Below, in pieces: positions 1 through 30,900 of a stretch of DNA of 64,000 nucleotides. The notes beneath the pieces were generated by a model, which had not been told where the DNA came from, did not search any database, and saw nothing but the letters and a program-made list of their open reading frames with translations. The stretch is taken from positions 11,160,001-11,224,000 of the forward strand of contig CM097887.1 of NCBI GenBank assembly GCA_044892525.1, in the 5' to 3' direction. A program made the translations under genes and the position numbers. Position 1 is the first letter of the stretch, and every line of letters starts with the position of its first letter. The DNA is from Schmidtea polychroa (Eukaryota).

Positions 1-2146
1 GGTGTGGAATCATTTTTTACGAGGGACAAAAACTCAAGTGGCGAAATGTACACAATGTAGGCAGGTTTTAAAGATATTGGGTGGGTGTACGACACCCAAT
101 CACACCCATTTGCGGACTAAACATAACAAGATTTTAAATAAACGAAAAATTGATAATGCGGATGCTGCTGGTGCGAATACCGGTGATTTAGCTACAAAAA
201 TCAAAACGATTAAAGATTTTTATATTTCAAAAGTAGACGAAAGTTTTGCTGCAGTCACATCTCGAATGGTAGCTTCAGACGGATTACCGTTTCACATATT
301 TTGTAGTTCAGACGATTTAAGAAAATGTTTACGAACGCGGGGATTTTGTGACATTCCAAAATCACCTACCAGTATACAAAAAGTCGTGATGGATTACAGC
401 AAAAAAAATCGGCAGTCGATAATTTCAATAATAATTACGTTTCAGTCTGACACTTGACGAATGGATTTCTTCTCGAAACAGACGTTTTATGAATGTTAAC
501 GTGCATGGATCAGGAGATCGAGTCTGGAATTTGGGATTGGCTCGTATTAATGGTCGATTTGCGTCTGAAGATTGTATAAAATTGCTGGAAAAAAAGCTTG
601 AATCATGCCAATTAAATATTGGAAATGATATTTTGTGCATTGTTACAGATGGTGCCTCCATGATGCAAAAAATTTGTAGATTTTTACCCTGCGAACAAAT
701 TTTATGTTTTGCTCATGCAATTCAAATTGCAATTGGTAATGTACTCTATAAAAAGCAAACGTTGGATTTAGTAGATAATGCAACAGAAAACGAAGTAGAG
801 CAGGAAAATAATGAAAATGAACCGAACTTTGAGTTAGATGAAGAAAATCTTACTGATGATGAGGATGATGGCAATGGAATGCGGGTAGATATGGGAATTG
901 AAACTGATGTTATGGAAACCACTGAAAACTTTCAACTACGAGCATTAATCACAAAAGTTCGGAAAATTGTTAAAACTTTTCGTCGTTCTCCTTTGAAAAA
1001 TGAAGTGCTTCAAAAATACGTGAAGCAAGATCATAAAAAAGAATTACAGCTTGTGTTAGATTCAAAAACTAGATGGAATAGCATGTTGTCTATGTTAGAG
1101 CGTTTTAATATTTTGAAAACTTCATTAAAAAAAAGCACTAATTGACATTAAAACGGACATAATTTTATATGAATCAGAATGGGATTCGGTATCACGAATA
1201 TCTAAAAATGTGATGCCAGTAAAATTAGCCGTAGACGCCTTATGCCGTGCAGATGCTAATTTAATTTCTGCGGATGCAACATTTACGTTTATGTTACAAA
1301 ATTTTAGTGAAAATGACGAATTTGCCCTTGAATTTAAAAAAGAGATAGAACTCCAGTTCAATCGGAGAAGAACTATTTTATCTGATGTGCTACAATATTT
1401 GCATAATGGTGACAAAACAAAAATTCACAGAGCATTTCCGGTCACTCGAAAACAGAAATAAATAAAATTATTCTATTACTGCCCCGGCGACTTAATGATG
1501 AAATTACTGCTGAAGTTGATTCAGCGGATTCCGAGTCTGATTTTGATTTAGTATTTGAACCTAACAAATTTTTTGAAAGTGAAACGCAGCCCTCTTTACA
1601 GAAATTGTTGCAGCAAAAAATCCAGCAGTCACTTTTACAGCCGACAACAAGAATTTAAAAAAAAACATCAATTCAATCTGCGATTCGAAATGAATTAAAA
1701 TTTTGGGACGAAGGTGGATCTCGTGGACCATTTTTGGAAATAATTTACAAAAACTTGTTGTGTATTCCCCCAACAAGTGTTGAAGCAGAGAGAGCTTTTT
1801 CCGTCGCTGTAGCATTTTCAACAAAAATTAGGCCAAGACTTAATGATACTACATTGGGCAATTTGTGTATGCTGAGAAGCTTCTTCAAAAAGCAAACATA
1901 AATTTTTATTTTTATATTATCTTTTTTTAAATATTGAATTTGTTTTGTTTATGTTTTTTTTATTAATATTAATACAAATATAAAAATTTTCTTTGTTTAC
2001 TTTGAAATAAATTTATGCTGGTTAACATTTTCTTTGCTCTTGACTTTTTATTTTTCAATTCCAGAATAATTCCGTTATTCCGAATTTCATCTTACGTAAA
2101 TCCGAAAATTCCGGAATTCTGTTTTCGTTAAAAAATGGATTCCCTA
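1..2146 (+). mobile_element. hAT DNA transposon, right part with probable 3' terminus
   Basis: Clustered (AA)TTCCG subterminal motifs at ~2057-2120, followed by ...GGATTCCCTA ending at 2146 (reverse complement TAGGGAATCC, a hAT-like terminus). The left TIR and TSD are not in the window. Confidence 0.6.
2..1901 (+). pseudogene. hAT-superfamily transposase, disrupted by frameshifts and stops
   Basis: N-terminal BED finger (WNHF...CTQC...H...H). SLTLDEW at ~445-465. TDGASMM, CFAHAIQ and RWNS motifs in ORF 489-1145. hATC dimerisation motif LLCIPPTSVEAERAFS at ~1760-1805. Spread over at least 4 frame segments; 5' part lies outside the window. Confidence 0.93.
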
Positions 2147-4479
2147 TACCAGACTGTACTTTTTCGAGCGTAAAATAAAACTTTTTGGTTTCAAGGCATT
2201 CGATATTCAGCATGTCTTCGTAATCAATATGGTTGCCTTCAATAATTGTTTCGGTCCGATCGATTAAGGAAACTGAAGCTTTCCACAATGTTCCTGTTGA
2301 CTACCTCATTTAACACGTTTTCAATGAAATTTATTTACGTCATTTCTACAGTAATTTAAAATGTTTTATTTATACAAATACCATATGATTCTGATTGGTT
2401 GATAGACTACAAATGTAAAATATATGAGTTTAAATTTGATACAACATGAATACAATATTTCTATTGGTAATTAGTATAATGAGTGTGTGCTCACGCAATA
2501 CAACAATAACGGTAGTGTCTTCAAATAAATCAATATGTGTTTGTCCAAATACCGCCAAGTTGATTGATATTTTATATATTCTTGACAAACTAAAATGGGC
2601 AAGGTATCTAGGAAAAATAATATCCGAAAGATTGTAAAATTTAGAAAACGGCTATGTATAATTTAAAAATTTATAGATTTAATAATTTGTTTATAAATCA
2701 TCAATATTGTACAGTTATTTGTCCCTGGTGAATGTAGGTAACCTGATGATAGTGATTCTATCGAAATATATAGTGAAAAAGTTGTACGAATGGTGATTTT
2801 TATTAATAAAGTTTTTACCGTGTTTATTTAAAAAACTAAGATGGTTATATATTTAAAATAAATGAACTAAACCAAAAATATAATTAACTGATAATAATAT
2901 TTTAAGAATTATCTTGTAAAAAAAATCATTTGCCATTTAATGAAAAAATTATTTGAAATATAAATTCTTTCGGTAACTTGGGATAAAAAATTTTTTACAA
3001 AAGGTAATCTGAGCATTTAAAAAGAACATTTTACCTAAGCAGTGATGAGCTAGGAGCAATGTTGCAAATACGTGTTGGGCAAAACCAAGAGACAATGTGA
3101 GTTAATTAAATATAAAGGTGGTATCTTTTGATAGCTTAGAGCAATTGTTTCCAAACACAAACTCCATAATTTATATTCAATTTATTTCTCGAATAACAAT
3201 AAAATTTCATTATTTCATTTTAAAATTAAGAAAATTATTTCCGAAATTTAGAAATTCTAGGATTGTGTTGGTTGATCTACAATGATGACATTGTCTATAA
3301 GTACAAGCTAGACTAATTTTTGTTACCATGGCTACAAATACAATCGGTGTGTATGCATGTGTGTGAATATGTCTGGTTGGGGTGAAAGACGGCTGAGTGG
3401 GTAAATTGACCAAGTTCGAGACCCAGCTCAACCAGAACGAATGGACCGAGAACTGGCAGGATGGATCAAACCAATCATTGAAGAGTTAGTCGAAATTTAC
3501 GAGAAACGGCCTCCAGTGGATTTGACTAGATTTGGGTAGAGCTGGGCGTGACAAACTTAAGAGAGCTTTATAGGCCAATATTCCCGCACGAAAACCATAA
3601 TGTGATGATGCTATGTGTACATATCAAATAAGTATATTGTTGGGTTTTTATTTGAAAGTCGGTTCTCTCTCTGACTCTTCGTGTTATTATTCAACCAAAT
3701 AAATCGAACCCAACACAGGATAATTTTATTCAATCTTTTTCACAATTACACTTTGTCACTATTTGTACCTTTCTCTCCAGATAATTTTCCACTCGATAAG
3801 GTAGAAAACCCAAGAAGCAATCACCTTTTCTTGTACGAGTCTTACCATTTTTGAATTACTAAATTTTTTTTCTTTTGATTACTGATCGCCGGATTTCTGC
3901 TTCTCTTCTTTCTTTTTCTCTTCGACCAAATGGCGGCTTGCTCATTTCTGAGCTCTTTTTTCATACTGTCAATTATCTAGAGAATTGCACTTAATTATTT
4001 CTCAGGGAATCTTAAGTCTATATTTGAGGGTTTTTGATTGTTTTAATTTGTTTACCCTTGATTAGGGCTCAAAATATTCCATCTCTTATCTTATTGCTCG
4101 GGTCTCACAGCGCACCGGGTTTTCTTCAGCGCTCGGGTTTTCCATTGTTTCCCATTTGTTTTCCCGCATTAACTCTCTCTGTGAACACCTTATTAAATTT
4201 TCATTAATAATTTTTTTAATTAATTTCATAATTTCTGAACTCGCCTATCGATTTGGCGTTCAACCATACCCGATACCTCCGTTCAATATTGATTTTTAAT
4301 AAGTTTTAATTAATTTTACATTTTTATTGATTTTACCCATATTTGTTATGCTTTCCTTTTATATATAAATTTTTTATTTTTGTGCTAACCTTAACAATAT
4401 TGTGTTGGTGCATAGTATTATGAGATGAACGAGAGGAGGAAATAAAACCCATAAATAGAATAGAGACCAGAATAGAAAA

Positions 4480-4691
4480 TCGGACATAGACCTTCTATCG
4501 GCAGTCCGTGACCCAAATGGGTGCTTGGCATTTATAGTGTATGCTCACTTTATGCTGATACTCACCATTTGATAAAGCACCAAAGTTGATCACTCAACGG
4601 GTATCAAGTGGTAAGACACATCATTTTATTCTAGGTTACGCTGAAAATACCTCGAAGGGGTAATATCTATGCTTACCTGTAACCCACCAAA
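4480..4691. repeat. Dispersed repeat, probable degenerate LTR
   Basis: GTTGATCACTCAACGGGTATC (4585) matches 27053 at 18/21. ACCTGTAACCCACCAAA (4675) matches 27142 at 16/17, with colinear spacing (90 vs 89 nt). AGACCTTCTATCGG (4488) is identical at 15730. Confidence 0.55.
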
Positions 4692-5026
4692 AGTTTTAAT
4701 TATAAAAATCTTTTTAAACTAATTTAGGCAAAAAACAACAGAATAATCATATATTCGGAGTTTATCCGACAAAATACTTTGACGCCCTAGTGGTAGAGGT
4801 GATTCAAACCACACACAATAATTTTTTTGGTGCAATATTAATAAAAAATTGGCTCAAATTCAATTAATTTGGTGCGTCATTAAATGGTAGCCATATTTTT
4901 TATATTTCAAAATATATATTAGAAGTGATTTTAATTTTAATTAGAGAAGCTTAATTGCGTATTTTTCATTTTCAAAATTTTTTTGGTATGTGTTGAGTAC
5001 AACCAGTCCCCATGTGAGGTCGAGAT

Positions 5027-5547
5027 CAGAGCCGTAGCTAGGGGGTGGCGAATGGGGCGACCGCCCCAGGCGCTAAAACTGTGAAATGATCATTTAAATT
5101 TTTTTTGCTTTTTTTTCTTTTTTTCATATTAAATTTTTATATTCTGCTTTCCATGTTTACTGTTTTCAAAAGTTAAACTAAAACAAAACTGTTTTGCTGG
5201 TCTATCTAAAGGTTTTTACAAACGGACGGCTAAATCCGAAGGTGGCTGATCATAAAAACAGTTTTGAGCATAGAAAATGCTACTTAGACTGGAAAGATTT
5301 TGAAAATCGTTTGAAAGGAAGGACAATTGATGATAATGGTTATAGATATCGATATGCCCGATGCAGTAGTCTATATATTAAAACGAGTTTGGTTAAGCAT
5401 TGTATAGATTTGCATCTTAATTTGACTCTTCAAGACCAATTCCATTCCTGTAAGTACATAATTAATGGGAGTTGTGGATTCTTTTGGCACCAGGGGCGCC
5501 TAATTTCAATCTCGCCCCGGGCACCATTTTCCCTAGCTACGGCTCTG
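5027..5547 (+). mobile_element. Non-autonomous hAT element (521 bp) carrying an internal transposase fragment
   Basis: Perfect 17-bp TIR CAGAGCCGTAGCTAGGG / CCCTAGCTACGGCTCTG. 8-bp TSD GTCGAGAT at 5019-5026 and 5548-5555. Internal peptide HKNSFEHRKCYLDWKDFENRLKGRTID resembles TTF-zinc-finger (Tip100-like) hAT transposases. Confidence 0.93.
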
Positions 5548-5737
5548 GTCGAGATAACCGGAAAGTAGAAAAATATTAAACTATCTGACTCCCATTGTTC
5601 TTTAATATTTCAATAAATAAATTCATTTACCGTATATTACCTGAGTTCCAATAATACTGGTCACATAGGTGCATTATTTAATGCATTATTCTGTTCTTCA
5701 CCTAATTGAATCTTTTGATTAAACTTATCTTAATTAA

Positions 5738-5982
5738 CCCTACACTGCATGACTTTTTATATTTGATACTTTGTACACTTTCACTTAAACTGTAAGACGT
5801 TTTAAAAATTGATTTTGTAATACAAAACTATTGAGAATTACATTACGGTTTTTTTGTATTATATTGCAAATATAGCCAATACAATGTAATATGAGAGAAC
5901 ATTTACCGAGAACAAGAGCGAGACAGTTTTTATTCTAATAAGATAATTGTGTATCACCAGTGATACAATATGCAGTGTAGGG
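5738..5982. mobile_element. piggyBac-type MITE (245 bp)
   Basis: 13-bp TIR CCCTACACTGCAT / ATGCAGTGTAGGG flanked by TTAA at 5734-5737 and 5983-5986. Confidence 0.92.
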
Positions 5983-6705
5983 TTAACATTAACTTTTCCT
6001 CTTGTTCGAGTTGCTTTCTGGATTTTTCTGGAATCCAAAATTTTCTTGAAAAATTCAATTTTTTCTAGCAGTCAATATAAAATCAATCTACTTTTAATGA
6101 AATCTTTTATCTTGTTCGCTATTGATCCTTTAACATTTTTATTTATCTTCATTAAATTTGAAACTCTCGATCATTATTTTTATTGATCGTTAGCTTAAAA
6201 AGAAATTTGTTTCAAGTAACTGACACAAGTAGTCCAAAAATGCCTTTTTTCAGTGAAAACCCTTGATAATTCATAATAGGTGCCACTAATACAAACATAG
6301 ACCAATAAAATGTGCTCAAAGTCAGAGGCTGATTGATCAAGGACTGATTTATGACGTCTACAGACAAAGTTAAGACCATTACACCAGACAGAAAATAAAA
6401 TATATTTATAATTATCTCTCACAGAAATTTAACGAGTCAACGTAATTATATAAAATGTGAACATGATCAATACGAGTGTTGAGAAGAATTAAAAATGTTC
6501 TTCAACATCGACAGCAACAAATATGGCCATAATTATATCTAACAATTTACAACAATAATTAAGGATAAAATAACAAAATATAATATAAAAATTAGAACTT
6601 TACAATTATTAACTACATAAAATAAAAAATTTTTATTGGAATAATCATAATGATTAAACATCGGTGAAGTTTTATGTTTAAGTTTTTTGCTTAATCACTT
6701 AAACA

Positions 6706-6933
6706 TTATAGAACAACATCTTTTATTTCTGGTGGAACTTCAACTTTAGGATGCTTGCTATCAAAGTGCATTCTATAAGTTTTAATATCTTGCATTTGTG
6801 TTTTACAAACAGTGCAAGTATAAATCAAAGCCTTTTGAGCAGCTTTCTTCTGATCAATTCCAGACTTCTTTGATTCAGTTTGCTTTTTTAAATTTTTTTG
6901 TTGTGATTGTATTTTTTGATGACCACGAGCCAT
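6706..6933 (-). CDS. ZNF706: Zinc finger protein 706 homolog (4F5/SERF-like N-terminus plus C2H2 finger), 75 aa
   Basis: MARGHQKIQSQQKN...ALIYTCTVCKTQMQDIKTYRMHFDSKHPK closely matches the ZNF706 family consensus (MARGQQKIQSQQKN...ALIYTCTVCRTQM...HFESKHPK). Full length, no coding intron. Confidence 0.95.
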   Translation of the reverse strand: MARGHQKIQSQQKNLKKQTESKKSGIDQKKAAQKALIYTCTVCKTQMQDIKTYRMHFDSKHPKVEVPPEIKDVVL

Positions 6934-6944
6934 TTTAGAGTAAT

Positions 6945-6995
6945 CTTAAGATAAATAATAAATAATAAAGCATACAATAAATGCAGTTAACTTAC
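6945..6995 (-). other. Probable 51-nt 5'-UTR intron of the ZNF706 gene
   Basis: Minus strand reads GTAAGT...T-rich...TTAAG, ending 11 nt upstream of the ATG. Confidence 0.55.
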
Positions 6996-7293
6996 ATTTC
7001 TAGCTTGGGAAACACAAACAAAATGATTATTTAAACAATCGAATTTTAATTTTAATCGGAAATTAATTTGATTTATTAAATGGCAAGAATTTGTCAATTC
7101 AGTTTTATTATCAAATTTATTTAAATGTATAAAAATGAATTCAAATGAAAATAATTAGTAAATTTTATAAAAATTAATATTAATTTTTGATTTAATTATT
7201 TTCAAAATTAGTTTTTTAACCCTTAAATGAATTCTGTAGCATATCTGCAACAATTTATTTAAGCGAATATAACTCAGTATACATGCAATAAAG

Positions 7294-7706
7294 CAGTGTT
7301 GTCCAAACTTTTTTGAGCCACGGCACACTTGGCTGAACTAAAAATTTTCGCGGCACACCTAAATTTTTTTTGCTTTATTTGCAATTTTTTATTGCACTTT
7401 TACTAATCTTTTAATAAGAAATGAAAAACTTATAAACTAAAAAATATTATTATTTAATATTTAAGATTCTAAATAAACATAATTAAGCTGCTTACGTATT
7501 GTAGATAGTCAATATTTCTAGTAAGAAATATAAATATGATTGTAAACAAATAAATTTCGCACTTAATTGACTGATTAACATTTAAATTTGATATAACTGT
7601 TAAAATATCCACAATTCAATTTCCTTTTATTAAGTTGTTTGGAAAAACAGGGTTTTTTTGACTTTTTTTAAAAAAAATTTCACGGCACACAGTTTGGACA
7701 ACACTG
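7294..7706. mobile_element. hAT-type MITE (413 bp)
   Basis: 16-bp TIR CAGTGTTGTCCAAACT / AGTTTGGACAACACTG. 8-bp TSD CAATAAAG at 7286-7293 and 7707-7714. Subterminal (C)GGCACAC motifs. Confidence 0.95.
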
Positions 7707-7935
7707 CAATAAAGGAACTATAATGCGTGTGTTGCATAAGTGTTATAAAACACCAAATTCTTTTTTTAAGCTTTGCAATATCAAACAGGTAGACCTGATT
7801 GACGGATTAGAGTTATTTACTGTTGAATCCATTCAACTCTGGAAGCTCTATCATATGGATTAGGTATTTATTTAATCAAATTAAAAACATTTCATCTCTG
7901 ATTTTGAAAAAATAACTCTTTTAAAAATGTACATC

Positions 7936-8420
7936 TTAAATTAGCTTCAACTCCTTTCCTGCGTTTGATTTCAAGTTTAGCGCGTTGTAGAAAGATTCAA
8001 CAGCTTGTGTATTGACGCCTGTAGAGTTATTTATGTACTCGTAATTATGGCACAGAACTATGAGTAAAATTAAAATTCTCAGACCAAAGTAGATTTGGTG
8101 ATACCAATCCAGATTGTTGAATTCTGTTTGCAAATTATTGGGACTAATACAGCTGCAGTCTTAATAGGAATTACTGTGGCGAAGGCTCTTGTAATGTTTT
8201 CTTTGACCTCCACGAGGAAAAGAGCATCTTTTTTATTGCTAGGGGATCGCCCACGATGGCTTTTACATTTGTGATTAAGCATCGTTTCATTTATCTGAAC
8301 GATGTTTTGCGGTCCCTCTAGTTTGTTATTGCAAAAATCAGTTTCTGGAATTTAATTGACAAATTTCTTTAATATTTTATCCACTGTTCCCTCAAAAACA
8401 TTCAAACTGTCCTTAATACT
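7936..8420 (-). pseudogene. Merlin/ISXO2-like transposase remnant
   Basis: KLEGPQNIVQINETMLNHKCKSHRGR (catalytic DE changed to NE), then ...TRAFATVIPIKTAAVLVPII...STIW, and HNYEYINNSTGVNTQAVESF in a shifted frame. These match ISXO2/Merlin motifs GGPG.IV.IDE...K..RGR and TGVHTQ.IES. Confidence 0.85.
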
Positions 8421-8829
8421 ATGTCTAGGTTATCTACATGATATATTTAATGAATATTTAATTAATTTGTAATTTTAAATAAATAATATATTTAAAATTA
8501 CATGGGGAAACTTTGTTGTGTTTTGTAAATTCAAGTCGGTAACCTCTGACTCCACGCGTCCCTTTAATCGTAAATAACAAAACAATAAACTTCCCAAAGT
8601 ATGAATCACAAAAATCTCTCAAAATCCAAAGATACATTCAGCGACAGAGTTTTAAAAGTTTAATTGGTTTTCGCTCGGCGAGGATGCTTTCTCAAATCTT
8701 TATCAATATTCACCTTTTGTCCACTAATTTCTTTTTAATAGAATTTTTACTCTTTAATCTGGTTCGCTTCCAATTCAATTTTCTTTTCACGTCTCGAATA
8801 TCTCCTAACTCTATTCGTTCGTCTCCCTA

Positions 8830-9400
8830 ACTTCTTGATTGCCTTAAGCTTGGTTTCTTCGCGACCATAGGTGAGACAGAATGCCTGTTTGATCTAATTT
8901 TCCCATTCCTTATATACTCTTCAAAATTGTTATTACAAATGGTTATTGCCGAACCAATTTCTCCCCTGACATTCGACTCCACATATCTGCTTCGACTGTA
9001 ACCCAGAATGACCCGATGAACAAAGATAATTAATGGCCCGCCAGGCTTTTCTACATGCATTATCTTTTTCTTGGTCTTTTCCCATTAACCATTGTGTCAT
9101 GATAATGGGCCCAAATCTTCATTCTGTTTACTTTTCTCTTTGTTTCCCGAACTCGGGATTTCTTTCTACTAGCTAATAAATTAATTTCGTTTTCTTGTTT
9201 TTCATCTTTTACGCACCATTTCGCACTTTTCCTAGCTCTTTCTGAAAATGCCGTTTTCACCATGTTATTCCTTGCTACCCCCATGACCAATTTTCCAGAC
9301 TTTAATTCGAATTTATGAATCTTTAATCGATTTTCTACAATTCATATTTTTGCGCTTTTCCCATATACTGATGTACTTTCTCGAGCCTTTCTACCTATTT
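8830..9400 (-). pseudogene. Possible highly degraded retroviral-type integrase fragment
   Basis: Only scattered motif-like pieces (VH..., GHGG, KCE, DLGPL..NG) across broken frames. Confidence 0.25.
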
Positions 9401-11753: not shown

Positions 11754-13223
11754 TTAACAAAATAGGTCTCCTAAACTTAATTCTATTTCGAATTCAAATA
11801 TTGCCAGTTGCAAATTAATTTTAGCGAGATTTAATTTAATATCTTCAATTTGCTTATATTCACTTGCACGGAGCCATTCAAAATAAATGATCTTTGCCTC
11901 AATTTGTGACAATATAGGGAAAACCAAATGAACCGAACAGTAAATTTTATAGAGATCTTTTGTGAAGTTTCCATACATGATTAGTTCTTCTTTCGTCGAT
12001 ACATCCATCATAAACTCGTTTTCTTGCAATAAATACAATAGAAACTTCAAGTAACCATAAACGGACTGAGTTTGGATAACATCTTTGGTTGTCATTGAAT
12101 AAAGTGACAAGTTTGACAAATTTAAAAATCTATTATCAACTGGTCGTAGCAAATCTTGAACGCATGTTTCGATGGCTATCAAATTTTCTGTAATATAATT
12201 CATCATATTTTTCATTAAAATGGTAAATTCTAATTTCAAAAATTCTGAAATGGGTCTATCTGAATCATTTGTAAAACAAAATCTTGATATGCAATCGTTA
12301 CATACAAATTTGTTTCTATTGAATTGGTTTTCTCTTTGACATAGTTGGCATTTATTTTCTTTTGATTTATTATTTTCAATTTTCCCTAATACAAATTTGA
12401 TTATTTTAACATTTTTTCTTATATTTGAAATTTCGTTCTCCACATTTTGGGTGTCTTCGCATATAATTTTTAATATATACCTCTCTGTAAGGGTGTTGTA
12501 AGATTTATTTTCCAATCTTTGATTATTAGCTTTGAATACATTAGCGTAAGCACAAAACATACTTTTTAAGAATTCGAAGGATTCGGAGAAATAATGACAT
12601 TTGCCGACCAACTTATGGTACTCTTGAAGTTCTGATCTATTGACAAAATACTTTTCATGTTTCTCATATAAATCACCTGAAAGATGATCAAAGGTAAAAC
12701 TTAGATTTTTGATGTTGTCGATTTCACAAATGTACTTTTTTGTAATATTTTGGTAGTTGACTGCAAATGTTTTCATTAACTGTTTTGATTCTGTAGAATC
12801 GGATAATAAAATGTTTTGGAAATCATTTTCTAAAAGGTTCTTTTTAAACAATTTCAAAGATTGAATAACTGAAACAAGGTTTTCAGAACTTATTTCAAAA
12901 GCTTGTAAAAAAACAGTAAGTTTTGGAAAATTATTGTGCATTAACAATTGCTCACTTTCCGACATAAAGTCAATCAGAATCTCCGCTACGGATATATTTC
13001 TCAGAGATTCGAGGGGATTCGAATAAATGGATATACTCACAATATCAGTACGATCCAATGGACAAGTTGGACTTTCGAGAATCCATTTCCTAATACATGA
13101 TACGCAGAACTTGTGTTGACACGGTAAAACAGCCGCATATTCAAACTCTAAATTATTTTCATAGCAAACGTTACAAACATTATCGGTTTCCATCATTCTT
13201 AATTCCTTTTTGATATCAAACAA
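11754..13223 (-). CDS. RING-finger protein, putative E3 ubiquitin ligase, 489 aa, intronless
   Basis: CNVC-x14-CQHKFCVSC-x9-CPLD: a C3HC4-type RING with Asp as the last ligand. A second Cys cluster CQLC-x12-CNDC lies near residues 292-311. The long ORF is uninterrupted in very AT-rich DNA. Confidence 0.88.
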   Translation of the reverse strand: MFDIKKELRMMETDNVCNVCYENNLEFEYAAVLPCQHKFCVSCIRKWILESPTCPLDRTDIVSISIYSNPLESLRNISVAEILIDFMSESEQLLMHNNFPKLTVFLQAFEISSENLVSVIQSLKLFKKNLLENDFQNILLSDSTESKQLMKTFAVNYQNITKKYICEIDNIKNLSFTFDHLSGDLYEKHEKYFVNRSELQEYHKLVGKCHYFSESFEFLKSMFCAYANVFKANNQRLENKSYNTLTERYILKIICEDTQNVENEISNIRKNVKIIKFVLGKIENNKSKENKCQLCQRENQFNRNKFVCNDCISRFCFTNDSDRPISEFLKLEFTILMKNMMNYITENLIAIETCVQDLLRPVDNRFLNLSNLSLYSMTTKDVIQTQSVYGYLKFLLYLLQENEFMMDVSTKEELIMYGNFTKDLYKIYCSVHLVFPILSQIEAKIIYFEWLRASEYKQIEDIKLNLAKINLQLAIFEFEIELSLGDLFC

Positions 13224-27160: not shown

Positions 27161-27577
27161 AATAATAAAATAATTATGGTAAGAACATAAAAATATTACT
27201 GATGAAAATTGTTATTATTTTAATTATAAATTATTAAACTAATACTTTGTAATAATTATAAAAATAAAATTAATAAAATATTGTAACAATACAATTAGAA
27301 TGATATCATTAGCCAATCAATTATGGATTAAATAGATTAATACAAGTAATTATTAACACAAGAAACATTTAAAAGAGCAACGTAGAGTTTTAATGTATAT
27401 CAAATAGTTGCCATTTTGAAATTATGCTCCCCAATTTAAAAGGTAATGCAATATAAATTTAGTTTCAAATCGTTTAGTTAGTGCATTAAATAAATAAATA
27501 ATAACAAATATATATTTACTGTTTGAAATGAAACTAATAAAATATATAAAATAAAAGCATTAATAATATATCAATTA

Positions 27578-27990
27578 TTAATAAGCGGGTAATATATTTA
27601 TGGAACTTTCAATTTCACAGCCCCTGAAGTTTTCCTAGTTCAACAGATGAAGCACCCTACAGTGTGTCAGCTGATATCTGGTCATTGGTGGCCACTGTTA
27701 TCTATATGATTACTGGTTAGGGATATCTCGATGAAAAATGGCATTTCTCTGCAAGAATTCTAGATCTTCGAGGATCTGCTTGTTGTATTTAATGACATAA
27801 TTTGTTGCTAAAGATCTTTCGATTTGATTCTCCAAAAACCTTAGAAAAAGGAATAATAATTCTAATAGTCATTTAGGTGTAATATTTATTACAAACTCTC
27901 AAATTTGCAAGCTATATTAATTGGATAATGTAAAATTAATAAGTGGCAATAGCAATTGGCTGTACTGTGCGTTCTATTTAAAGAAAAATT
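27578..27990 (+). pseudogene. Ser/Thr protein-kinase gene fragment (subdomains VIII-IX) forming the founder unit of the satellite
   Basis: 27602-27720 reads GTFNFTAPEVF / (1-nt frameshift) STDEAPYSVSADIWSLVATVIYMITG*. Copy 2 supplies the missing base (APEVLLSST). Confidence 0.8.
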
Positions 27991-30900
27991 AGCAGCAAAT
28001 GTATTGATGGAATTTTCCATTTCACAGCTCCTGAAGTTTTACTTAGTTCAACAAATGAAACACCCTAAACTGCGCAAGGTTATACTTGGTCTGTTTTTGC
28101 CACTGCTATCTATATGAATACTAAAAAATTGTATTTTCATGCAAGAATCCAGGCTCTTGAGGATCTGTTTGCTGTATTTAATGATATCATTTGTTGCTAA
28201 AGACCTTTCGATTTGATTCTCCAAAAGAAGGGGGATTTAGGGGTAATATTTATTATGAACTCTCAACTTCACAAGCTATATTAAATTGATGTAAAATTAG
28301 TAAGTGGCAATAGCACTTGACTGTACTGTGCTTTATATTTAATGAAAAATTAGCAGCAAATGTATTGATGGAACCTTCAATTTCACAGATCTTGAAGTTT
28401 TACTTAGTTCAACAAATGAAGCACCCTATACTGCGTCAGGTTATATTCGGTCTGTTGCTGCCACTGCTATCTATATGAATACTAAAAAATTGTATTTTCA
28501 TGCAAGAATTCCAGGCTCTTGAGGATCTGCTTGCTGTATTTAATGATATCATTTGTTGCTAAAGACCTTTGATTCTCCACTGCTATCTATATGAATACTA
28601 AAAAATTGTATTTTCATGCAAGAATTCCAGGCTCTTGAGAATCTGTTTGCTGTATTTAATGATATCATTTGTTGCTAAAGACCTTTCGATTTAATTCTCC
28701 ACTGCTATCTATATGAATACTAAAAAATTGTATTTTCATGCCAGAATTCCAGGCTTTTGAGGATCTGTTTGCTGTATTTAATGATATTATTTGTTGCTAA
28801 AGACCTTTCGATTTGATTCTCCACTGTTATCTATATGAATACTAAAAAATTGTATTTTCATGCCAGAATTCCAGGCTCTTGAGGATCTGTTTGCTGTATT
28901 TAATGATATTATTTGTTGCTAAAGACCTTTGATTCTCCACTGCTATCTAAATGAATACTAAAAAATTGTATTTTCATGCAAGAATTCCAGGCTCTTGAGG
29001 ATCTGCTTGCTGTATTTAATGATATCATTTGTTGCTAAAGACGTTTCGATTTGATTCTCCACTGCTATCTATATGAATACTAAAAAATTGTATTTTCATT
29101 CAAGAATTCCAGGCTCTTGAGGATCTGTTTGCTGTATTTAATGATATCATTTGTTGCTAAAGACCTTTCGATTTGATTCTCCAAAAAACCTTAGAAGGGG
29201 AATAATAATTCTAGCAGTGATTTAGGGGTAATATTTATTATGAACTCTCAACTTCACAAGCTATATTTATTGGATAATGTAAAATTAGTGAGGGGCAATA
29301 GCACTTGACTGTACTGTGCGTTCTATTTAAAAGAAAATCAGCGGCAAATGTATTGATGGAACCTTCAATTTCACAGATCTTGAAGTTTTACTTAGTTCAA
29401 CAGATGAAGCACCCTATACTGCGTCAGGTTATATTTGGTCTGTTGCTGCCACTGCTATCTATATGAATACTAAAAAATCGTATTTTCATGCCAGAATTCC
29501 AGGCTTTTGAAGATCTGTTTGCTGTATTTAATGATATTATTTGTTGCTAAAGACCTTTCGATTTGATTCTCCACTGCTATCTATATGAATACTAAAAAAT
29601 TGTATTTTCATGCAAGAATTCCAGGCTCTTGAGGATCTGTTTGCTGTATTTAATGATATCATTTGTTGCTAAAGACGTTTCGATTTGATTCTCCACTGCT
29701 ATCTATATGAATACTAAAAAATTGTATTTTCATGCCAGAATTCCAGGCTCTTGAGAATCTGTTTGCTGTATTTAATGATATTATTTGTTGCTAAAGACCT
29801 TTGATTCTCCACTGCTATCTAAATGAATACTAAAAAATTGTATTTTCATGCAAGAATCCAGGCTCTTGAGGATCTGTTTGCTGTATTTAATGATATCATT
29901 TGTTGCTAAAGACCTTTCGATTTGATTCTCCAAAAGAAGGGGGATTTAGGGGTAATATTTATTATGAACTCTCAACTTCACAAGCTATATTAAATTGATG
30001 TAAAATTAGTAAGTGGCAATAGCACTTGACTGTACTGTGCTTTATATTTAATGAAAAATTAGCAGCAAATGTATTGATGGAACCTTCAATTTCACAGATC
30101 TTGAAGTTTTACTTAGTTCAACAGATGAAGCACCCTATACTGCGTCAGGTTATATTTGGTCTGTTGCTGCCACTGCTATCTATATGAATACTAAAAAATT
30201 GTATTTTCATGCAAGAATTCCAGGCTCTTGAGGATCTGTTTGCTGTATTTAATGATATCATTTGTTGCTAAAGACGTTTAGATTTGATTCTCCACTGCTA
30301 TCTATATGAATACTAAAAAATCGTATTTTCATGCCAGAATTCCAGGCTTTTGAAGATCTGTTTGCTGTATTTAATGATATTATTTGTTGCTAAAGACCTT
30401 TCGATTTGATTCTCCACTGCTATCTATATGAATACTAAAAAATTGTATTTTCATGCAAGAATTCCAGGCTCTTAAGGATCTGTTTGCTGCATTTAATGAT
30501 ATCATTTGTTGCTAAAGACGTTTCGATTTGATTCTCCACTGCTATCTATATGAATACTAAAAAATTGTATTTTCATGCAAGAATTCCAAGCTCTTGAGGA
30601 TCTGTTTGCTGTATTTAATGATATCATTTGTTGCTAAAGACGTTTCGATTTGATTCTCCACTGCTATCTATATGAATACTAAAAAATCGTATTTTCATGC
30701 CAGAATTCCAGGCTTTTGAAGATCTGTTTGCTGTATTTAATGATATTATTTGTTGCTAAAGACCTTTCGATTTGATTCTCCACTGCTATCTATATGAATA
30801 CTAAAAAATTGTATTTTCATGCAAGAATTCCAGGCTCTTGAGGATCTGTTTGCTGTATTTAATGATATCATTTGTTGCTAAAGACGTTTCGATTTGATTC

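Follow-up and report, generated by a model that had tools for sequence, protein, structure and literature searches.

Organization of the tandem array

The window considered here is a stretch of 64,000 nucleotides (nt) from Schmidtea polychroa (C3:11160001–11224000), analysed against a genome of 781 Mb with 32% GC, in which genome-wide matches fall on four large contigs (C1–C4). From 27.6 kb to the end of the window, and for a further 22.6 kb beyond it (ending at C3:11246572), the sequence is occupied by a tandem array with a total length of about 59 kb. This array is very probably a locus-specific, non-coding complex satellite, born in situ from a rearranged fragment of a STE20-like kinase pseudogene. 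It comprises runs of monomer-like pieces (287 in total, 122 or 116 bp each) and 59 linker units (361, 390, 436 or 408 bp), one of which closes each monomer run; all copies lie head-to-tail on the plus strand. The A linker (361 bp) is present in 28 copies plus one 364-bp variant, the B linker (390 bp) in 25 copies, and the C linker (436 bp) in four. The C linkers are found in the distal part only (extended coordinates 77749, 82833, 84466 and 85622, i.e. C3:11237749–11245622). Each consists of an A linker, then a 75-nt repeat of the start of kinase exon 3 (see below) and then a B-type end, and they are best read from this composition as A/B recombinants. The two monomer lengths are associated with different linkers: 27 of 28 A linkers follow a 116-bp monomer, and 23 of 25 B linkers a 122-bp monomer. 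The distal part of the array also repeats in blocks of about 5 kb.

The monomer-junction pattern gave 286 matches genome-wide, 286/286 of them inside this array and on a single (plus) strand. With its 287 monomer-like pieces and 59 linker units, the array is far beyond chance. The many copies in the same orientation are those of a satellite, and so is the concerted evolution of the array: interior monomers deviate from the consensus at 0–6 per 100 sites, whereas paralogs are about 23% different, and linker units tens of kb apart are in many cases identical. Occurrence at several loci or chromosomes, or at centromeres, is not seen, as every match lies in this one array on C3. By its size, the array is a single-locus macro-array and not a genome-wide satellite. 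A literature search found no description of it.

Just past the window end, an A-type linker carries an 8.9-kb insertion (L031, ~484–9200; C3:11224484–11233200), which is bordered on the right by a long T run and accompanied by the loss of 13 nt of target sequence. These features would fit a non-long-terminal-repeat (non-LTR) retrotransposon in minus orientation.

Structure of the left edge

The features at the left edge are collected in Table 1. As described in the initial annotation, the first unit (unit 1, 27586–27992) spans 407 bp and retains the motifs APE (27623–27631), SADIWS (~27667–27684, containing ADIW) and ITG (27709–27717) on the plus strand, together with about 18 extra nt (27714–27731) that are missing from every other unit. 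It combines B-like states, namely the ~25-nt AATAATAATTCTA block, TTGGATA and GCGTTCTATTT, with the A-like states AAGTGGC and AAAAATTAGCAGC. Unit 2 (361 bp) is already of A type and has one monomer; it keeps APE (GCTCCTGAAG, 28027–28036) and has a TAA at 28066–28068. From unit 3 onward, DLE replaces APE (GATCTTGAAG, from 28384) and the monomers are multiplied, with six of them in unit 3. All of this was reproduced. What had to be revised is the reading of the "helix" stretch as forward sequence, which is actually a kinase HRD-loop exon read backwards: the minus strand of 27723–27841 reads ...LEDLEFLQRNAIFHRDI and corresponds to the catalytic-loop exon of a protein kinase (tblastn, E = 8e-13).

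Table 1. Features at the left edge of the array (positions of the window).
Feature	Position	Strand	Evidence and remarks
Intron 3 remnant of the local kinase pseudogene	27291–27545	−	blastn to parental loci, 81–90% identity, blocks 27291–27339 and 27409–27545
Left inversion junction, then last exon 2 bases and intron 2	27546–27585	+	Alignment to intron 2 of L001 and L005
Exon 3, inverted relative to its flanks	27586–27715	+	Start codons 27586–27603, 94-nt deletion, GT.NF.APE...SADIWS...ITG; basal in exon-3 tree
Right inversion junction	27716–27722	+	GTTAG (first 5 nt of intron 3) plus 2 nt; compared with exon 3/intron 3 boundary of L001, L005, L022 and L029
Exon 2, kinase subdomains VIa–VIb (...LEFLQRNAIFHRDI)	27723–27841	−	tblastn with L001 exon 2, 65% identity, E = 8e-13
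Last ~85 nt of intron 1	27842–27925	−	Includes the "B block" deleted in A-type units; alignment with 10–11 parental loci
~73-nt internal piece of a MITE-like dispersed repeat	27920–27992		3′ end is the first tandem-duplication junction (AATC microhomology)
Unit 2	27993–28353	+	Intermediate exon-3 copy with APE and TAA, long private branch; one monomer; linker identical to basal A haplotype
Homogenised array	28354–64000	+	Runs of 2–13 monomers (122/116 bp) ending in A (361 bp) or B (390 bp) linkers; continues past the window

Read along the window, the parental pieces follow the order reversed intron 3, forward intron 2, forward exon 3, GTTAG, reversed exon 2 and reversed intron 1, and each of them occurs exactly once. 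This single occurrence of each piece, together with their order, points to a pseudogene fragment on the minus strand in which intron 2 and exon 3, together with 5 nt of intron 3, were inverted in place in a copy-neutral manner. About 770 bp long, the fragment runs from the 3′ part of intron 1 through exon 2 (the HRD exon), intron 2 and exon 3 (the DFG/APE/DIW exon) into intron 3, most of which is included. One breakpoint is located at GAGATAT^AAAAC (end of exon 2) and the other 5–7 nt into intron 3; a short inverted match, ATAAAA/ATAT, is common to both. The left flank (intron 3) is unique, absent from the array repeats and opposite in orientation to exon 3 of unit 1. The adjacent segment with the left junction lies outside the repeating unit except for its last few bases, and later units have a fragment of the dispersed repeat in its place. 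The right junction is kept by unit 1 alone, as it falls within the 18 nt deleted from all other units. Exon 3 of unit 1 carries small frameshifting indels, and a deletion of 94 nt between two TTGG motifs has taken out its DFG. The AATC junction, which joins the repeat piece to the intron 2/exon 3 boundary, is present in every unit. The 122-bp monomer is composed of the last 23 nt of exon 3 and about 99 nt of reversed exon 2.

No further part of the pseudogene (exon 1, exon 4 or a direct exon 2) was found beyond 27291–27933 by tblastn, blastn and tblastx over 20 kb upstream and 17 kb downstream. An apparent extension of homology upstream of 27291 into AT-rich sequence was rejected, the local alignment being no better than shuffles (z 0.6–1.2).

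The non-kinase component of the unit is a ~73-nt internal piece of a dispersed repeat, which is found in every linker and lacks both termini of that repeat. Transposable element (TE) homology therefore does not extend over most of the unit: about 73 of 407 bp belong to the dispersed repeat and the rest to kinase exon and intron. The complete repeat is about 170 bp long with sub-terminal inverted repeats, like a miniature inverted-repeat transposable element (MITE; e.g. L039:2968–3117, among L036–L045), and has at least 202 candidate copies on C1–C4. At least 40 of the 202 candidates were scored as copies, and four pattern matches lie outside the array. A search for the dispersed repeat in the parental kinase loci, where it could have marked a progenitor, found none.

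Independent support for this structure was drawn from contigs of public short-read runs and not from raw reads. In two samples of one study, contigs span 27484–28127 with 0 differences and at a depth of 16–24, compared to 600–7800 inside the array. A contig from a second study covers 27489–27914, including both inversion junctions, at single-copy depth and with 19 differences (95.5% identical).

The parental kinase family

A genome search with unit 1 returned at least 30 dispersed loci in which the two halves of the unit lie on opposite strands, 50–250 bp apart, the pieces following the order exon 2, intron 2, exon 3. The parental gene structure is provided by locus L001: a glycine-loop exon 1 and intron 1 come first, then exon 2, which ends in HRDIK, an intron 2 of 45 nt, exon 3 (PANIL...DFG...APE...DIWS...ITG) and an intron 3 that begins with GTTAG. 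The parental exons match Pfam Pkinase with E values from 3e-16 to 2e-9. As most of the loci carry exons 1–3 in order, they are attributed to a real, expanded gene family; an alternative assignment as TE-carried fragments was rejected on the same observation. Comparison with PDB sequences identifies the family as STE20-like, with STK10, SLK and MAP4K as best matches. Its members (L001–L030) are clustered at C1:263.0–264.9 Mb, C4:86.7–92.9 Mb, C3:3.4–8.5 Mb and C2:27.1/119.0/131.3 Mb. Within the clusters, the copies are 17–140 kb apart and their introns are conserved about as well as their exons (74–90%). Two loci, L005 and L019, are orphan fragments without exon 1 that hold exons 2 and 3 only.

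Homology of the array to this family is evident from the tblastn match given above and from the reversed exon 2 of unit 1, which aligns with positions 93–124 of Pfam Pkinase (PF00069) at E = 0.004. Still, the repeat unit is not a kinase gene, having no continuous frame over subdomains I–XI with HRD, DFG and APE. The array keeps exons 2 and 3 only, on opposite strands, with frameshifts and stops in addition to the DFG deletion; unit 1 alone still has HRD, and APE is confined to units 1 and 2. The array is non-coding and gives no indication of function.

Rooted phylogenies

The position of unit 1 was addressed by rooting with 11–12 paralogous kinase loci. Reversed exon 2 and intron 1 formed one partition of 233 columns; here, all A, B and C units make up a clade with support values of 100/98, and unit 1 is the sister of this clade on a private branch of 0.093. 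Unit 1 does not nest inside the A or the B clade, since trees constrained in this way were rejected by the approximately unbiased test (p-AU 0.005 each). In the exon-3 tree, the first copy is basal on a short branch (0.032) and the later copies form a clade (100/98) on a stem of 0.13. The second exon-3 copy falls inside this later clade on a long private branch, with APE still kept.

Fixed-column counts gave the same polarity. Over the 173 columns common to all sequences, A reaches 76.3% identity to the outgroup consensus, B 76.9% and unit 1 79.8%; each outgroup is closer to unit 1 than to the array consensus (11/11). In these columns, unit 1 keeps the ancestral state at 15 sites where A and B are both derived; 12 changes are private to unit 1, and another 19 sites show the derived state in every unit. 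The paralogs also possess the 18 nt, the B block and TTGGATA, so that the deletions seen in later units and in the A type are derived. An apparent closest relation of the A type to the parents was discarded as an artefact of pairwise identities with cheap gaps, and the fixed-column counts were used instead. The proposal that unit 1 is ancestral to both linker types thus stands insofar as it is basal to A, B and C together. However, it is to be seen as a sister relic, with 12 private changes of its own against 15 on the crown stem.

A similar distinction applies to the idea that unit 1 mixes features later divided between the linker types. Its B-like states are ancestral, but the A-like TTAGCAGC is derived and common to A, while B keeps the parental TCAGCGGC. 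The paralogs carry TCAGCGGC as B does, and B is also closer to the consensus of the dispersed repeat just upstream. Within the last ~70 nt of unit 1, 0 sites join A with B against unit 1, and 2–3 transitions join unit 1 with A. On this thin evidence, unit 1 is probably a mosaic whose last ~60 nt are kin of the A type. This probably came about either through an early exchange, which would have seeded the A type as well, or through conversion from the adjacent A unit.

Divergence along the array, its right end and its surroundings

Plotting divergence against position did not reveal the expected gradient. Instead, a step of about 1.5 units was observed: unit 1 differs at 18 per 100 sites and the second exon-3 copy by about 11%, with the other monomer-like pieces at 0–6 per 100 sites and flat means across the array. 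Homogenisation that is weakest at the boundary, as anticipated in the initial annotation, is thus seen for the left-edge unit; the right end is truncated and not diverged, so that the effect is seen at a single edge. At the right end, the array stops inside a B block among ordinary units. In 17 kb searched beyond this point, neither the remainder of the B linker nor any dispersed-repeat or parental sequence was found. As nothing related follows, the right end is attributed to a truncation.

Elsewhere in the window, an intron-less open frame of 489 amino acids (11754–13223, minus strand) encodes a protein with a RING finger at its N-terminus (Pfam zf-RING_2, E = 1e-9) and no family match over its remaining length. 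Two adjacent open frames occupy 2–1145 on the plus strand; the first has a weak match to the BED zinc finger (E = 0.003, under the Pfam cut-off) and looks like a hAT-type transposase remnant. Decayed sequence resembling 2–1145 follows the right end of the array.

Origin of the array and alternative explanations

While the state of each unit can be read directly, we infer the order of events as follows. The series starts from the kinase pseudogene fragment on the minus strand, in which intron 2 and exon 3 were inverted in place, 94 nt were deleted and a ~73-nt repeat piece came to adjoin intron 1. The resulting 407-bp block would then have undergone a first tandem duplication, joining the repeat fragment to the intron 2/exon 3 boundary at the AATC microhomology. 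Subsequently, the expanding lineage would have lost 18 nt (inversion junction and HRD codons) and replaced APE with DLE. The A type may have arisen from a B-like state by deletions of 25 nt and 3 nt, followed by formation of the 122-bp sub-repeat at a CCA microhomology and of its 116-bp variant. Unequal exchange would have built and homogenised higher-order blocks, up to 59 kb, before recombinant C linkers formed and the 8.9-kb retrotransposon was inserted. Unit 1, and partly the second exon-3 copy, would have escaped homogenisation because the edge position bars in-register mispairing; both are presumably sister relics with a drift of their own of about 7–9%.

The order of duplication, A/B split and monomer amplification had already been put forward in the initial annotation, and the single monomer of unit 2 fits it, short of proving that order. 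Its account of the birth was incomplete in that the in-place inversion, the 94-nt deletion and the dispersed-repeat fragment were involved as well.

Several observations weigh against an in situ birth as described, or against parts of it. The kinase cluster closest to the fragment is 7 Mb away. Even the nearest paralogs reach no more than 74–85% identity, so that the rooting relies on distant outgroups and short partitions (117–233 columns), and the root is set by paralogs and not by the true progenitor or an orthologous empty site. The 2–3 derived transitions common to the tail of unit 1 and the A type need a later exchange or conversion, or parallel CpG changes. In sample X5, ten of the 19 differences cluster at 27847–27884, where the unit-1 allele is B-like. 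This cluster implies that the edge unit is not fully isolated from the array; provisionally, it may be a gene-conversion tract that reached the edge unit in one lineage. Finally, the truncated right edge puts the remaining dispersed repeat and a second diverged edge beyond check.

The alternative that survives best is that a TE captured the kinase fragment together with the repeat piece and delivered both to this locus, which would make the array a TE-derived satellite. It would account for a fragment that lacks exon 1 and exon 4 at this distance from the kinase clusters, and it draws on the existence of other exon 2 and 3 orphan fragments (L005, L019), on the ~73 nt of dispersed repeat in every unit and on the TE remnants around the array. 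Still, we consider it unlikely, as the fragment is not flanked by terminal repeats, target duplications or element ends, and the dispersed-repeat piece is internal with both termini missing. Moreover, the other orphan fragments keep the parental orientation, and all rearrangement junctions occur at this locus only.

Under a second alternative, unit 1 would have begun as an ordinary unit of the array and then either decayed at the edge or been overwritten by conversion from a kinase paralog. Edge units do gather mutations, and the long private branch of unit 1 (0.093) with its 12 private substitutions can be read in this sense. Decay, however, is unable to restore 18 nt that match parental HRD codons and the start of intron 3, or to restore parental states at 15 sites and 3 indels. 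Conversion from a paralog, in turn, cannot create the inversion junction, which is found in no paralog, and it would wipe out the 19 derived sites common to unit 1 and the whole array. The unique flank, moreover, continues the same pseudogene, and we regard both variants of this explanation as very unlikely. That an assembly artefact next to a collapsed repeat created the structure of units 1 and 2 is barely credible: long arrays with many identical higher-order blocks are hard to assemble, and inner copy number or block order may be wrong, but the left edge is crossed without a difference at single-copy depth in two samples (27484–28127) and recovered as a 95.5%-identical allele by a second study (27489–27914).

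Comparison with known arrays

Kinase-related tandem repeats are known from the Stellate/Su(Ste) system of Drosophila melanogaster, which derives from a casein-kinase-2 beta-like gene with added foreign sequence. The Ste and Su(Ste) units are near-complete genes with a shown function in the PIWI-interacting RNA (piRNA) pathway. The present array is similar in being kinase-related, tandem and chimeric with a transposon-derived piece, and in holding sequence antisense to the parental family. In contrast to Stellate/Su(Ste), its unit consists of two broken exons that are about 75–80% identical to the paralogs and contain no open frame. By analogy, the array might be transcribed and feed piRNA-like small RNAs that dampen the STE20-like family, a role that we hold to be highly improbable. 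The only observation in its favour is the geometry, i.e. sense exon 3 next to antisense exon 2 of an expanded family; the identity of only 75–80% to the paralogs speaks against effective targeting by small RNAs. Two very small contigs from a run that may be RNA fall on the monomers, which says nothing about transcription.

Relics at the edges of arrays under unequal exchange have been described before (Smith 1976; McAllister and Werren 1999; both as cited in PMC5411766), including those of the Drosophila Rsp and 1.688 arrays (PMC5411766, PMC4280042). The array in S. polychroa shares with these a homogeneous interior, a terminal repeat that escapes homogenisation, TE insertions in and near the array and higher-order blocks. 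It differs in that the terminal unit is the founder copy, running into unique pseudogene sequence, so that the creating rearrangements are readable base by base. Furthermore, one edge survives here and the divergence forms a step rather than a gradient.

Satellites can also be seeded by TEs through tandem or double insertions (PMC5932611). In both cases, duplication of a small block gave rise to an array at a single locus, unequal exchange enlarged it, and founder structures can still be seen. Here, by contrast, the seed is a host pseudogene fragment with inversion and microhomology junctions, to which the TE contributed the ~73 of 407 bp noted above.

Implications

The array is an unusually clean example of a known process and not a new kind of element. 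The birth of a satellite is usually inferred after the founding junctions have been erased; at this one locus, the whole series of events is kept. It extends from the fragment, the inversion breakpoints, the microhomology deletion and the first duplication junction with its later loss to the split of linker types, the sub-repeat, higher-order amplification, the recombinants and the retrotransposon insertion. The relic branch and the crown stem are similar in length and provide a natural internal clock. As a worked example, the locus can inform models of unequal exchange as well as the microhomology-mediated origin of tandem repeats.

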